A stretch of 64,000 bases of DNA from the sequence record NC_049849.1; one strand, 5' to 3'. The notes under the pieces were generated by a model. That model searched no databases. It was not told the origin of the DNA and saw only the letters and a program-made list of their open reading frames with translations. Positions 41,846 through 50,030 of this stretch are shown here, in pieces. Numbering within the stretch: the stretch's first letter is position 1; every line of letters starts with the position of its first letter. The translations under genes and the position numbers were made by a program.

Positions 41846-42049
41846 GTGAGCGTTGCACGAGAGATTGACCAGTACTGGAATGCGTGGACTCGTAGGAATC
41901 GGAGTCGCCTCCAGCCAACATACCGACCGGAGCAGTTTGTGTTCGGGGCGCATCCTGCAGTGCAAGCTGGCTTGCTCACACCGACTGGCGTGGCTTGCGC
42001 AGTAGCAGTGATCCCCGAGCAGGAACTGAACGCTATTGTTCTGCCCTAA
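41846..42049 (+). CDS. hypothetical protein
   Basis: GTG after GGAG SD. Confidence 0.45.
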   Translation: MSVAREIDQYWNAWTRRNRSRLQPTYRPEQFVFGAHPAVQAGLLTPTGVACAVAVIPEQELNAIVLP

Positions 42050-42401
42050 CTGCCAGCACGACGGCAACCACAAAGTGATTGAGACACGCCACCACGAAGG
42101 CTACACCTATCGTAGGCGTGAGTGTCCGCAATGTGAGTGTCGATACAATACGCGAGAAGCGTTCTTTGATGCGGGAATCCCCCAAGGTCCTAGAACGCGT
42201 CCGCGTCCACCGAAACGCAGGAAACCAAAGGTTGAACCGATGAGTGAAATTCTGAGTGGATTGAAGATGCCGGCTGAGCCGCAAGTCAACCAGTCGGTCC
42301 TGGGCGACAAGGATGCCCGCAAGCGTGCGCAGCTTGAGCACAAAGCTCGGGTGCGTGATCTGTTGAACTCGAAGCAAGACAAAGACCTGGAGTGGTTCTG
42401 A
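42036..42401 (+). CDS. NrdR-like zinc-ribbon protein lacking the ATP cone
   Basis: MFCPNC...KVIETR...YRRRECPQCECRYNTRE matches the NrdR N-terminal ribbon; basic, Pro-rich tail. Confidence 0.7.
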   Translation: MFCPNCQHDGNHKVIETRHHEGYTYRRRECPQCECRYNTREAFFDAGIPQGPRTRPRPPKRRKPKVEPMSEILSGLKMPAEPQVNQSVLGDKDARKRAQLEHKARVRDLLNSKQDKDLEWF

Positions 42402-42798: not shown

Positions 42799-43036
42799 GG
42801 TCTTGATAGCAGCGGCAGTGGTTCTGAGCCTGACCGGCTGCGACCAACTGACTGAACCGAAGCCTCGGCCACAAGCAATGACTGAGGACGGCAAGATCAT
42901 TACGCTCGGTACGTACTACGGCGAAATGTGTCTCGACGGATTCGTGGCGCTCACCAGCACGCATCAAAGCTGGTGGAAGTTGGACAAAGAAACGCGTCAG
43001 CCCATCAAGTGCGCACCCATTGGAGAAAAGCAGTGA
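42791..43036 (+). CDS. small lipoprotein
   Basis: Lipobox LTGC. Confidence 0.65.
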   Translation: MSKVLIAAAVVLSLTGCDQLTEPKPRPQAMTEDGKIITLGTYYGEMCLDGFVALTSTHQSWWKLDKETRQPIKCAPIGEKQ

Positions 43037-43347
43037 GCAAGCTCATCAAGATTTCCGAGCACAAAGCATTCAAGGTCCAGCCGGTACTCATCAAAGGTGA
43101 GAAGCTGATTAGCGTCCGGCAGATGTACACGACCAAGAACGATCCCGAGTGGAAGCATGGCAAAGCCGGGATCACCACGACGTACGAAGAACTGCGCAAG
43201 GTGTTCAAGCGCGCCAAGGCTTTGCACGAAGACGAAGCTACTGAGTACGAAGATATCTTCGGGGAACTGGCGAAGCCTTCCGACAAGGAAAGCAAGAAGG
43301 CTAAGCCAGCCAAGAGTACGACCAAAAAGAAAAAGGTGAAGACGTGA
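43033..43347 (+). CDS. PC4/YdbC-like ssDNA-binding protein
   Basis: KGEKLISVRQMYTTKNDPEWKHGKAGITT resembles the PC4 fold; Lys-rich tail; GGAG SD. Confidence 0.55.
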   Translation: MSKLIKISEHKAFKVQPVLIKGEKLISVRQMYTTKNDPEWKHGKAGITTTYEELRKVFKRAKALHEDEATEYEDIFGELAKPSDKESKKAKPAKSTTKKKKVKT

Positions 43348-43862: not shown

Positions 43863-43864
43863 TA
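43856..43864 (+). promoter_or_regulatory. AATTTAATA putative late promoter
   Basis: Matches the AATTTnATA found upstream of three structural genes. Confidence 0.4.
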
Positions 43865-43887
43865 CATAGGCTAACTAGGAGGCCCTC

Positions 43888-45513
43888 ATGCGAATTACTG
43901 CAGCACAATTGGCGTCGCTTCTCGACGTTCTCTACACCCTCGTCATCGTCTACCAGGAAGTAGGCGAGTCCAAAGCTACTGGTCAGAATGCACACCGGCT
44001 GAAGCAACTCAAGCCAACCGCCAAACAGTGGACGGCTGAGTTGCCCAGTCTCGAGCATGCAGTCGATGCAGAACTCACTGGCAAGGATACGGTCTCGACC
44101 CTGGTGAATCTTGGGTTCGAAATCAAAGACGTGTTCGAGCAGCTGAAGCTCAACGAAGGATTCAGTTCGGCTGAGCTTCAAGCGCTGAAGGCCGCCGGTG
44201 CATATCTGCGCACGGACTCGGAACCTGCGCTGAAGACTCTGATGAAGCTGGCTGGCCTTACGGGTTCGCCCTGGGTCAGTCAGCGATTCAGACCGCAGGT
44301 TGGTAAGCAGTCTGACACGCAAGGCCGGCTTGAGAAGTTGGTGAACAAGATGGTCGGCCGCAAGGGTACAGCGTTGACGATGGAAGAAGCTGTACTGGCG
44401 AAGGCCACGTACCCCGAGGAGTATGCGGAGTACTTGTCCCTTCGCCGGGCGTTCAATCAGGTATGGAAAGATGCTTTGGTTGATTACGTGCGAGCATCCG
44501 GGCAGAAGCTCGTGCCGTTTAAGGATGCAAAGGCATATCTCGATTCCAACAACATCGAGTATGCTCTGACCGATGGCTTTGATGGTCTGATGGATGACCA
44601 GGGCCGCTTCTATACGCGCAAGGGCGATCTGATCGAAGGTGTTCCGGCTGCGGTGAACTTTCCGCAAGTGGTGATGAATCCGGACTATCCGAAAACGCCC
44701 TGGGTGTTCCAAGCCATTCGACCGAACGGTGAACGTGGCGCATATTTCTATACGGCCGATTTCAAGAAGAGTCAGGCCAAGAAGAAGTTTGAAAAGGTCG
44801 ACGGCTTGAACGCAAAGATGCCGAGCATTCGTGGCAAGTGGATGAAGAGCGTGAAGGCGTTTGACCAAACGAATCCGGTCTGCCTGGCGTCTACTATTCT
44901 TGAACTGCTGTATGAGTTCTCGGCTCGCGTTGGCACTCCCAACAATCCGACGTATGGCATTGGCACGCTTTTGGTCAAACACTTGAAGGTGCAGCCTAAC
45001 GGTGACGTGCTGATTGCGTACAAGGGCAAAGACTCTGTGCCCCACAAGCACTTGGTGAAAGTTTCCGATCCCGACCAGAAGTTCATTGCCCGCAATCTCC
45101 GCGAGCTGATCGATGGCAAGGAACCGACCGAGCGCGTGTTTGCTATTGGCCGCAAGCCCGTTGGTCCTGCATACGCCAATCAGTTGTTCAAGCAGCTGTC
45201 TGGCATGCCGGAGATTACGGTGCACAAGATTCGTACGTATCGCGGAACCAAGCTGTTCAATGAGCTGGTTGAGCAAGAGCTGCCGAAGCTACAGTCGAAG
45301 AAAAACCTTGATGAGAAAACGGCTCTTGCAGTCTTCACCAAGATTGCAGAGAAGGTTGGCAAGCTGTTGAATCACGTTCGCCGTGGCGCTACTGGCACCA
45401 AGGTAACGGGCATGACTGCAATCGCAAACTACATCGACCCCTCGTCGTCGGTCGCATATTTCCGTCAGTTGGGCTTCCGCCCACCCAAGGTGCTCGAAAA
45501 GTTCGACGTTTGA
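43888..45513 (+). CDS. DNA topoisomerase IB with long N-terminal extension
   Basis: Catalytic pentad pattern: SARVG (R), YKGKD (K), HKIRTY (R), LLNH (H), ANYIDP (Y); TYGIGTL; N-domain VPAAVNF..V..NP; TAGGAGG SD. Confidence 0.85.
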   Translation: MRITAAQLASLLDVLYTLVIVYQEVGESKATGQNAHRLKQLKPTAKQWTAELPSLEHAVDAELTGKDTVSTLVNLGFEIKDVFEQLKLNEGFSSAELQALKAAGAYLRTDSEPALKTLMKLAGLTGSPWVSQRFRPQVGKQSDTQGRLEKLVNKMVGRKGTALTMEEAVLAKATYPEEYAEYLSLRRAFNQVWKDALVDYVRASGQKLVPFKDAKAYLDSNNIEYALTDGFDGLMDDQGRFYTRKGDLIEGVPAAVNFPQVVMNPDYPKTPWVFQAIRPNGERGAYFYTADFKKSQAKKKFEKVDGLNAKMPSIRGKWMKSVKAFDQTNPVCLASTILELLYEFSARVGTPNNPTYGIGTLLVKHLKVQPNGDVLIAYKGKDSVPHKHLVKVSDPDQKFIARNLRELIDGKEPTERVFAIGRKPVGPAYANQLFKQLSGMPEITVHKIRTYRGTKLFNELVEQELPKLQSKKNLDEKTALAVFTKIAEKVGKLLNHVRRGATGTKVTGMTAIANYIDPSSSVAYFRQLGFRPPKVLEKFDV

Positions 45514-46239: not shown

Positions 46240-47052
46240 GTGCCAACTTCGTATTTGAAGACATTGAGCGAGAAAGGCAAGGGCTCAGTGCCTGAGCTGG
46301 AGAAGCAGTGGGAGAAAGCTAAGGCAGACGCCAAGGCGCAAGGCCAGGCGGATAACTGGGCGTATGTCACGGGTATCTTTAAGCGGCGTATCGGCGCGTC
46401 TGCGTTCAGCGATAACTGGATGGACAACGAAGACCGCCTGGCCGCTGTCGATCCTGTAAATCAGTTTGCGACTGAGACGGTCGCGGATGTGAACGCAGAA
46501 CATCGACTGAACGCCGCAGCCTTTCTGAGGTCGTTGCCCGATCAAGCGAACCGCGGAGCATGCCGTACGGCGTTGTTCTCATATCTGTATGGTCGGAACA
46601 CTCCGCAAGAAGTGGAGTTGGCTCTTATGCGCCGCCAGGTCTATGCCGGGCGTGAGAGTGGCAAGGGTGCGGGCATTTTCTTCTACTGCCCAGGTACGGA
46701 CCGATTCCTCATGGTCAAGCGTTCGGCCTACGGCGATGAAGCCGAGTCCTGGGCCACGCTGGGCGGTGGAGTAGACGAAGGCGAGGAGCACGAAGAAGCG
46801 GCGTTGCGTGAAGCTCTGGAAGAAGGGCGGTTCATAGGCGAGGTCGAGCTGATTCCTATGTACACGTCTTATCAGGAAGACTTCAAGTACTACAACTTCC
46901 TTGGCATTGTCGAAGAAGAGTTCACGCCAGTCTTGAACGAAGAGCACACGGATTATGGTTGGTTCTATGCAGACGACTTCCCGCAGCCGATTCTCGAGCC
47001 ATTCCAAGATGCACTGAACGAATCCCCGATCAAACAACACTTCGGATTTTGA
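46240..47052 (+). CDS. Nudix hydrolase with N-terminal extra domains
   Basis: Nudix box GGGVDEGEEHEEAALREALEEG; LNEEHTDYGWF. Confidence 0.85.
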   Translation: MPTSYLKTLSEKGKGSVPELEKQWEKAKADAKAQGQADNWAYVTGIFKRRIGASAFSDNWMDNEDRLAAVDPVNQFATETVADVNAEHRLNAAAFLRSLPDQANRGACRTALFSYLYGRNTPQEVELALMRRQVYAGRESGKGAGIFFYCPGTDRFLMVKRSAYGDEAESWATLGGGVDEGEEHEEAALREALEEGRFIGEVELIPMYTSYQEDFKYYNFLGIVEEEFTPVLNEEHTDYGWFYADDFPQPILEPFQDALNESPIKQHFGF

Positions 47053-49982: not shown

Positions 49983-50030
49983 AAAAGAAAAGCCCCTAGA
50001 GACGAAAATTCTCTAGGGGCTTTTTTTGCT
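49983..50030. terminator. bidirectional Rho-independent terminator at the strand switch
   Basis: AAAAGCCCCTAGAG...CTCTAGGGGCTTTT flanked by an A-tract and a T-tract between convergent genes. Confidence 0.9.

Follow-up and report, generated by a model that had tools for sequence, protein, structure and literature searches.

Achromobacter phage Motura encodes a type IB topoisomerase with a helical N-terminal module and a recombinase-type histidine

Known type IB topoisomerases (TopIBs) include the short enzymes of poxviruses (vaccinia and variola; PDB 2h7f and 1a41) and bacteria (Deinococcus radiodurans, 2f4q and 3m4a; Pseudomonas aeruginosa, PAT) and the long-form enzymes of archaea and eukaryotes (Caldiarchaeum, 6z01; human Topo I, 1k4s). 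In 2009, poxviruses and mimivirus were the only viral holders listed, and an undiscovered viral group was postulated as the source of the bacterial enzymes (Forterre and Gadelle 2009, PMC2647321). Achromobacter phage Motura has since been named, along with the orthologs of its enzyme, as a carrier of a phage-specific topoisomerase I among the DNA-topology functions of jumbo phages (Iyer et al. 2021, PMC7824862). ORF108 of phage phiRSL1 has been deposited as "topoisomerase IB," and "topoisomerase I" labels are found in PaBG, Lu11, HRDY3, and the PhiXhv phages of Xanthomonas and RHph phages of Rhizobium. With these GenBank labels and the study of Iyer et al., it is already published and annotated that Motura and its relatives carry a TopIB, and the core finding is known. 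In this study, we have analyzed a 64,000-nucleotide (nt) window of sequence record NC_049849.1, which is 100% identical to Motura (MN094788 / NC_049849; subtracting 62,000 from a record position gives the window position). Motura is a jumbo myovirus (genus Moturavirus) with a genome of 221,431 bp. We conclude that the open reading frame (ORF) at 43888 to 45513 is a genuine, intact TopIB and an ordinary member of the published jumbo-phage clade.

A sequence-only reading of the window had proposed a type IB identity, which is upheld by sequence, conservation, and fold. The Pfam family Topoisom_I (PF01028) matched residues 290 to 500 with 78.2 bits (cutoff, 23.7; E value, 7.6e-22), as it also matched all 38 long variants and all of the homologs listed. 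The five catalytic residues that had been read from the sequence, R347, K381, R449, H496, and Y515, form a complete R-K-R-H-Y set; they are invariant in 44 aligned homologs (33 to 62% identity) and occupy the same columns in all 46 complete viral ORFs from IMG/VR contigs. Their spacing (R-34-K-68-R-47-H-19-Y) follows the short layout known from poxviruses and bacteria, in which His and Tyr are not separated by a linker domain, with a 10-residue beta-hairpin (residues 497 to 506) inserted into that layout. When the family profile was compared with solved structures, the catalytic residues aligned with those of archaeal TopIB 6z01 (E value, 1.1e-17), Deinococcus TopIB 2f4q (5e-17; R137/K174/R239 region), and variola TopIB 2h7f (1.5e-10; R130/K167/R223). 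A single-sequence alignment with 6z01 paired LNHVR with LNHKR and NYIDP with NYIDP. In PHROGs, the full-length protein fell into phrog_23460, which is listed as "unknown function" (E value, 1.6e-131).

An AlphaFold2 model of the protein, built from the 44-sequence alignment, had a mean predicted local distance difference test score (pLDDT) of 92.1 and a predicted template modeling score of 0.82. Foldseek returned 21 matches to this model at an E value of 0.001 or less, every one of them a TopIB. VIA, a fold search independent of Foldseek, gave Z scores of 22.8 for human Topo I, 21.5 for the archaeal enzyme, 20.1 for the variola enzyme, and 20.0 for both the Deinococcus and the Leishmania enzymes, whereas tyrosine recombinases reached at most 12.3 and the protelomerases TelK and TelA reached 8.0 and 7.2, respectively. 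As modeled, therefore, the fold is nearer to TopIBs (five representatives, Z scores of 20.0 to 22.8) than to recombinases. The best explanation of the sequence and the model is that the Motura enzyme belongs to a phage-specific TopIB clade and is predicted to be catalytically competent.

The chain of variola 2h7f from residue 8 to residue 312 superposes on residues 208 to 541 of the model, a two-domain clamp that carries all of the R, K, R, H, and Y residues and in which no coiled-coil linker separates His from Tyr. Because variola residue 8 superposes on model residue 208, residues 208 to 290 are taken to be the ordinary small N-terminal domain of a TopIB, in which G230, F231, G233, M263, N264, and Y288 are conserved. 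The sequence-only reading had described an extra N-terminal domain of about 250 residues; the long helical extension is real, but its true length is about 205 residues (residues 1 to 207). Beyond these additional helical residues, Motura differs from the poxviral enzymes in having His446 in place of vaccinia K220, a His-to-Tyr spacing of 19 rather than 9, and NYIDP rather than SKRAY at the tyrosine. The relationship at the sequence level is weak, as the profile E value given above indicates.

The bacterial enzymes are similar in their short form and prokaryotic context; however, Asn replaces the second His in these proteins (N280 in D. radiodurans and N283 in PAT; PMC2666729), whereas the phage protein retains His496, and they carry Lys three residues before the second catalytic arginine (Arg-II) and do not have a helical N-terminal module. 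The archaeal and eukaryotic long-form enzymes gave the best profile and fold scores and share the LNH(K/V)R and NYIDP motifs, and 6z01 is of similar length (539 aa). Unlike these enzymes, the phage protein has no linker domain, has His446 in place of Lys, and begins with a segment (residues 1 to 207) that is not the Topoisom_I_N cap (PF02919), which comprises core subdomains I and II. The closest relatives are the jumbo-phage orthologs (phiRSL1 ORF108, PaBG gp84, Lu11 gp197, NCTB, and BCSR5; phrog_23460), which have the same architecture and catalytic pentad at 28 to 48% identity and differ from the Motura protein in nothing essential. A single-protein scan found no relatives in bacterial or archaeal genomes, which is weak evidence given that such a scan reaches close relatives only.

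The residue three positions ahead of Arg-II sets the phage family apart. In the profile alignment, the archaeal, bacterial, and poxviral references have Lys at this position and the phage family has His; thus, where a Lys three residues before Arg-II is taken as a mark of TopIBs, Motura has His446 instead. This histidine is invariant in all 47 viral loci, and across a wider set of 163 motif-bearing proteins the position is occupied by His in 140 and by Lys in 15. At the sequence level, the active site of the clade therefore reads R-K-H-R-H-Y, the hexad of the tyrosine recombinases, including their second histidine (His-II). Vaccinia K220 is counted in the catalytic set, and His is typical at that position in tyrosine recombinases (Jain et al. 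2009, PMC2666729). Only tyrosine recombinases are stated to have His-II (Cre H289), with TopIBs lacking it, yet it is dispensable in Cre, and the residue at the K220 position contacts the +1 phosphate without being central to the chemistry (Gibb et al. 2010, PMC2943603). Because the residue at this position is not central to the chemistry, His446 marks a variant of TopIB and does not exclude membership in the family. Judged from the alignments, an invariant recombinase-type His-II in this clade is a detail that goes beyond the literature found.

These observations bear on the possibility that the protein is a site-specific strand-transferase rather than a general swivel (acting as a recombinase, as a resolvase of concatemers or Holliday junctions, or as a telomere resolvase) in which a TopIB scaffold with an R-K-H-R-H-Y active site would use the helical module for synapsis. 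The invariant histidine is what such an enzyme might be expected to have, and vaccinia TopIB is itself capable of Holliday-junction resolution in vitro. A catalytic domain of the same superfold is found in tyrosine recombinases and protelomerases (Cre, lambda Int, XerD/H, TelK, and TelA); however, their N-terminal domains are different, the Motura protein has a TopIB-type N-terminal clamp domain, and its NYIDP and GKD motifs are TopIB-like. The acidic residue of recombinase box I is also missing, since the sequence after the first catalytic arginine (Arg-I) is RVGT, with Thr instead of Glu or Asp three residues on. The protein matched neither the Pfam protelomerase family nor Phage_integrase (PF00589), and no recombination site or hairpin telomere was evident in Motura. 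The ends of the genome record share an 81-bp exact direct overlap (positions 1 to 81 and 221343 to 221423, the latter 8 nt from the right end), which fits a circular or permuted assembly left untrimmed and does not fit defined termini, and neither terminal palindromes nor hairpin-type inverted repeats were found there. Moreover, even Cre can do without His-II, so that a protein with this residue does not necessarily carry out another type of reaction. Based on these data and the gap in fold scores between TopIBs and protelomerases, the resolvase or telomere-resolvase role that had been suggested for this gene is disfavored, and we regard strand transfer as very unlikely; the His at residue 446 nevertheless keeps a small door open for a resolvase-type role.

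The second feature that sets the clade apart is the N-terminal module. In the model, residues 1 to 207 are all-helical, with 11 helices and a pLDDT above 90, and a model of the module by itself, built from 46 sequences, had a pLDDT of 93.3. Its first part, N1 (residues 1 to 133), is missing in homologs of about 400 aa; its second part, N2 (residues 134 to 207), has a long helical stretch from residue 176 to residue 204, and K172, Y182, R186, R187, W193, K194, Y200, and R202 are conserved in this segment. When the module alone was compared with solved structures, there was no credible match (best Z score, 6.3, where the helical background reached as high as 13; best Foldseek E value, 0.53), and its sequence profile found only designed helical bundles in the PDB. 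Among viral predicted structures, the search recovered only the module itself, the PaBG topoisomerase (TM score, 0.74), and one probable further phage protein. A search of 1.84 billion representative proteins with the module profile yielded at least 291 clusters at an E value of 0.001 or less. The TopIB catalytic domain is also carried by 133 of the 144 new matches listed, and the other 11 are pieces of 114 to 342 aa that end at or just past the module, like the products of truncated contigs. Because the listed matches either carry the TopIB domain or look like fragments, the module appears to be exclusive to TopIB; with no known fold, it too goes beyond the literature found.

Two further assignments were tried and rejected. 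For the module, a language-model score of 0.75 to 0.78 pointed to the eukaryotic Topoisom_I_N cap, but PF02919 was not matched, the module alone had no TopIB match, and no structural alignment of the model to the archaeal and eukaryotic long-form enzymes extended upstream of residue 216. A match to the Med15 KIX domain (E value, 0.003 to 0.006) fell below the cutoff and was taken as noise. At the other end of the protein, about 25 clusters (among proteins P0095 to P0228) and five viral loci (L040, L041, L044, L045, and L048) have C-terminal extensions of 88 to 282 aa beyond the TopIB domain that had no Pfam match, except that one of these relatives (P0129; 1002 aa) carries a DUF5661 domain in its extension. 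The idea that the 116- to 192-aa extensions of some relatives are fused NUDIX domains was ruled out, as no Pfam match was obtained. In one viral locus (L039:5980-6012), the match to the TopIB N terminus is interrupted after a few codons by an in-frame stop, which could reflect a frameshift, a sequencing error, or another start; the sequence of this locus was excluded from the alignments. The coordinates of the gene, its parts, and its neighbors are collected in Table 1.

Table 1. Window coordinates of the Motura TopIB gene, the predicted parts and key residues of its product, and neighboring features
Feature	Position	Strand	Description
NrdR-like protein gene	42036-42401	+	Labeled "hypothetical protein"; NrdR-type zinc ribbon (PF22811, E value 7e-9, residues 1-41), then a basic tail
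PC4-like single-stranded-DNA-binding protein gene	42928..43347	+	PF02229, E value 7e-6; Lys-rich C-terminal tail
Gap between upstream ORF and TopIB gene	43863-43887	+	25 nt in all
Shine-Dalgarno TAGGAGG	43876..43882	+	5 nt ahead of the TopIB ATG
TopIB gene	43888..45513	+	Uninterrupted ORF, 541 aa, ATG start, TGA stop; QDH83578.1, GenBank label "topoisomerase"
N1, residues 1-133	43888..44286	+	Helical bundle; isoelectric point (pI) 4.9-9.9 across the family; phage-TopIB-specific, no known fold
N2, residues 134-207	44287..44508	+	Basic helical hairpin; median pI 9.6
Residues 208-290	44509..44757	+	Small beta-rich N-terminal clamp domain; corresponds to the N-terminal domain of poxvirus TopIB
Residues 291-541	44758..45510	+	TopIB catalytic domain, PF01028
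R347 (Arg-I)	44926..44928	+	Equivalent to vaccinia R130
K381	45028..45030	+	GKD motif; equivalent to vaccinia K167
H446	45223..45225	+	Three residues ahead of Arg-II, motif VHKxR; vaccinia counterpart K220
R449 (Arg-II)	45232..45234	+	Equivalent to vaccinia R223
H496	45373..45375	+	LNH(V)R; equivalent to vaccinia H265
Y515	45430..45432	+	Predicted nucleophile; NYIDP motif, as in archaeal and eukaryotic TopIBs
NUDIX-domain gene	46240..47052	+	Mislabeled "A/G-specific adenine glycosylase"; PF00293, E value 2.4e-15, residues 143-253
dCMP deaminase gene	49414	+	In the TopIB block
Hairpin	49988..50024	-	Strong, 15 pairs; where the block meets minus-strand tail genes

The TopIB gene lies in a tight co-directional block (between 37.0 and 46.2 kb, no gap exceeds 27 nt), with the structural genes on the opposite strand, and the hairpin near 50.0 kb is likely to be the end of this block. 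The same gene order is found in phiRSL1, where TopIB (ORF108) is followed by NUDIX (ORF109) and dCMP deaminase (ORF113) genes, and the PaBG and Lu11 orthologs adjoin thymidylate kinase and repair genes. The gene is probably cotranscribed with genes of DNA and nucleotide metabolism. The sequence-only reading had placed a late-like promoter ahead of it; however, a sigma-70 scan found no promoter-like site in the 25-nt upstream gap, and the AT-rich upstream piece TTTAATACATAGG did not recur above chance (6 matches versus 4.9 expected), so this claim was not confirmed. One has to go about 10.6 kb upstream, to 33220, to reach the nearest copy of the host-type promoter cassette. In the Lu11 record (JQ768459; locus L057), a "putative middle/late promoter" spans 107991 to 280538, a 170-kb annotation whose range is evidently an error; this mis-ranged feature, which runs beneath the TopIB ortholog, was rejected as promoter support.

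Several of the neighbors deserve comment in their own right. The NrdR-like protein could serve the phage as a regulator, with genes for nucleotide reductase or nucleotide metabolism as its targets. The annotated start of the PC4-like gene overlaps the upstream ORF by 109 nt, and its true start may lie further downstream. The NUDIX protein has an N-terminal extension of 140 aa.

This neighborhood bears directly on the suggestion that the enzyme is packaged in the virion. On this view, the capsid would take up the enzyme and deliver it together with the DNA, and the enzyme would then work on the incoming genome or have a part in packaging. Poxvirus TopIB is encapsidated, jumbo phages do package enzymes, and the PaBG ortholog, gp84, adjoins the virion genes gp80, gp81, and gp83. 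In Motura, phiRSL1, and Lu11, however, the gene sits among DNA- and nucleotide-metabolism genes rather than structural genes, and in Motura it has no promoter of its own. PaBG gp84 was not among the 14 virion proteins identified, although the method used (gel separation and matrix-assisted laser desorption ionization of Coomassie-visible bands only) was of low sensitivity, and unlike the poxviral case, there is no evidence of encapsidation for the Motura enzyme. The MRITAA N terminus, to which attention had been drawn, is literally present, but no special meaning was confirmed for it: no other MRxxAA start anywhere in the Motura genome follows a real ribosome-binding site, and its conserved T-A-S is part of helix 1, ahead of which homologs have up to 37 further residues. 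We have therefore rejected the idea that MRITAA is a leader common to several proteins or a tag for packaging, there being no enrichment in the genome and the residues belonging to a conserved structural helix with a variable length of protein upstream of it. With no shared N-terminal leader in the Motura genome, virion packaging is unsupported, and we consider it most unlikely.

The company that the gene keeps might also suggest a role in a nucleotide-signal or DNA-damage conflict with the host, rather than in bulk topology; examples would be the processing of nicked, modified, or ribonucleotide-containing phage DNA or work beside antidefense enzymes. The NUDIX gene is the commonest TopIB neighbor (of 46 viral loci, 22 have it downstream in the same orientation), the upstream neighbors of the phiRSL1 TopIB are NAD-salvage genes, and rare relatives fuse Acb1 or Tad6 ahead of the module and TopIB. 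However, NUDIX enzymes are also ordinary sanitizers of the nucleotide pool, gene linkage alone is weak evidence, the fusions account for 3 of the 144 listed clusters and may be gene-calling read-throughs, and nothing in the TopIB itself indicates such a function. We hold a host-conflict role to be very unlikely. As to the fusions themselves, both named examples are metagenomic: P0183 (704 aa) has Acb1, an anti-CBASS protein, at residues 9 to 134 (E value, 6e-7) before the putative fused module and TopIB, and P0222 (784 aa) has Tad6, a Thoeris inhibitor, at residues 42 to 202 (E value, 3e-35) in the same arrangement. A second Tad6-bearing member is counted among the relatives.

The framing of the sequence-only reading, that T4-like phages use type II enzymes, is incomplete, since Motura encodes a type IIA topoisomerase as well. 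Its two subunits, a 676-aa GyrB/ParE-like and a 542-aa GyrA/ParC-like product (loci L002 and L003), are encoded by adjacent genes at about 46.5 to 50.5 kb of the genome, about 57 kb upstream of the TopIB gene. Because both type IIA subunits are present, the TopIB supplements that enzyme and does not take its place. Taking these data together, we think it likely that the Motura TopIB relaxes supercoils as an ATP-independent swivel while the phage genome is replicated and transcribed, rather than inside the virion, and that it does so beside the type IIA topoisomerase of the phage.

The protein has four parts, namely the helical bundle, the basic hairpin, the clamp domain, and the catalytic domain. 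The mechanism that we propose follows established TopIB chemistry. Duplex DNA would be clamped between the beta domain and the catalytic domain, and Y515 would attack one strand to give a nick with a 3'-phosphotyrosine link, with R347, K381, R449, and H496 stabilizing the transition state. The free duplex could then swivel, so that both positive and negative supercoils would be relaxed without ATP, after which the nicked strand would be resealed. The enzyme would thus provide an energy-free swivel for the replication and transcription of a 221-kb genome. As for the module, most likely the basic helix from residue 176 to residue 204 would add a DNA-contact surface and the variable bundle of residues 1 to 133 would add a docking surface.

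Some considerations weigh against the swivel that we favor. The invariant His446 departs from canonical TopIB active sites, and, judging from the residue alone, the chemistry or its regulation could be altered. The role given to the helical module is pure inference, since relatives of known function were found neither by structure nor by sequence, and the timing of expression is inferred from gene position only. In addition, our literature search yielded no biochemical study of any member of the phage clade.

The place of the clade among TopIBs is a separate matter. The family profile scores about equally for archaeal and bacterial TopIBs, and the jumbo-phage clade is a candidate for the viral group postulated by Forterre and Gadelle (PMC2647321). 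It can also be envisioned that the clade is a mechanistic and evolutionary intermediate between TopIBs and tyrosine recombinases, given its combination of a TopIB fold and clamp, an invariant His-II, and a TopIB-exclusive module. We regard this as unlikely; if it were true, the enzyme might carry out regulated or site-selective strand transfer rather than plain relaxation, the module might mediate DNA-DNA synapsis or the docking of a partner, and the clade could be the postulated viral source of the bacterial TopIBs (PMC2647321).

In conclusion, the Motura gene poses three questions that could interest topoisomerase specialists: why an ATP-free swivel should be kept beside a type IIA enzyme, what purpose is served by a TopIB-exclusive helical module of about 205 aa, and whether the invariant recombinase-type histidine alters the chemistry. 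With at least 291 sequence clusters, the clade to which this enzyme belongs bears on the origin of the short TopIBs of bacteria and poxviruses.

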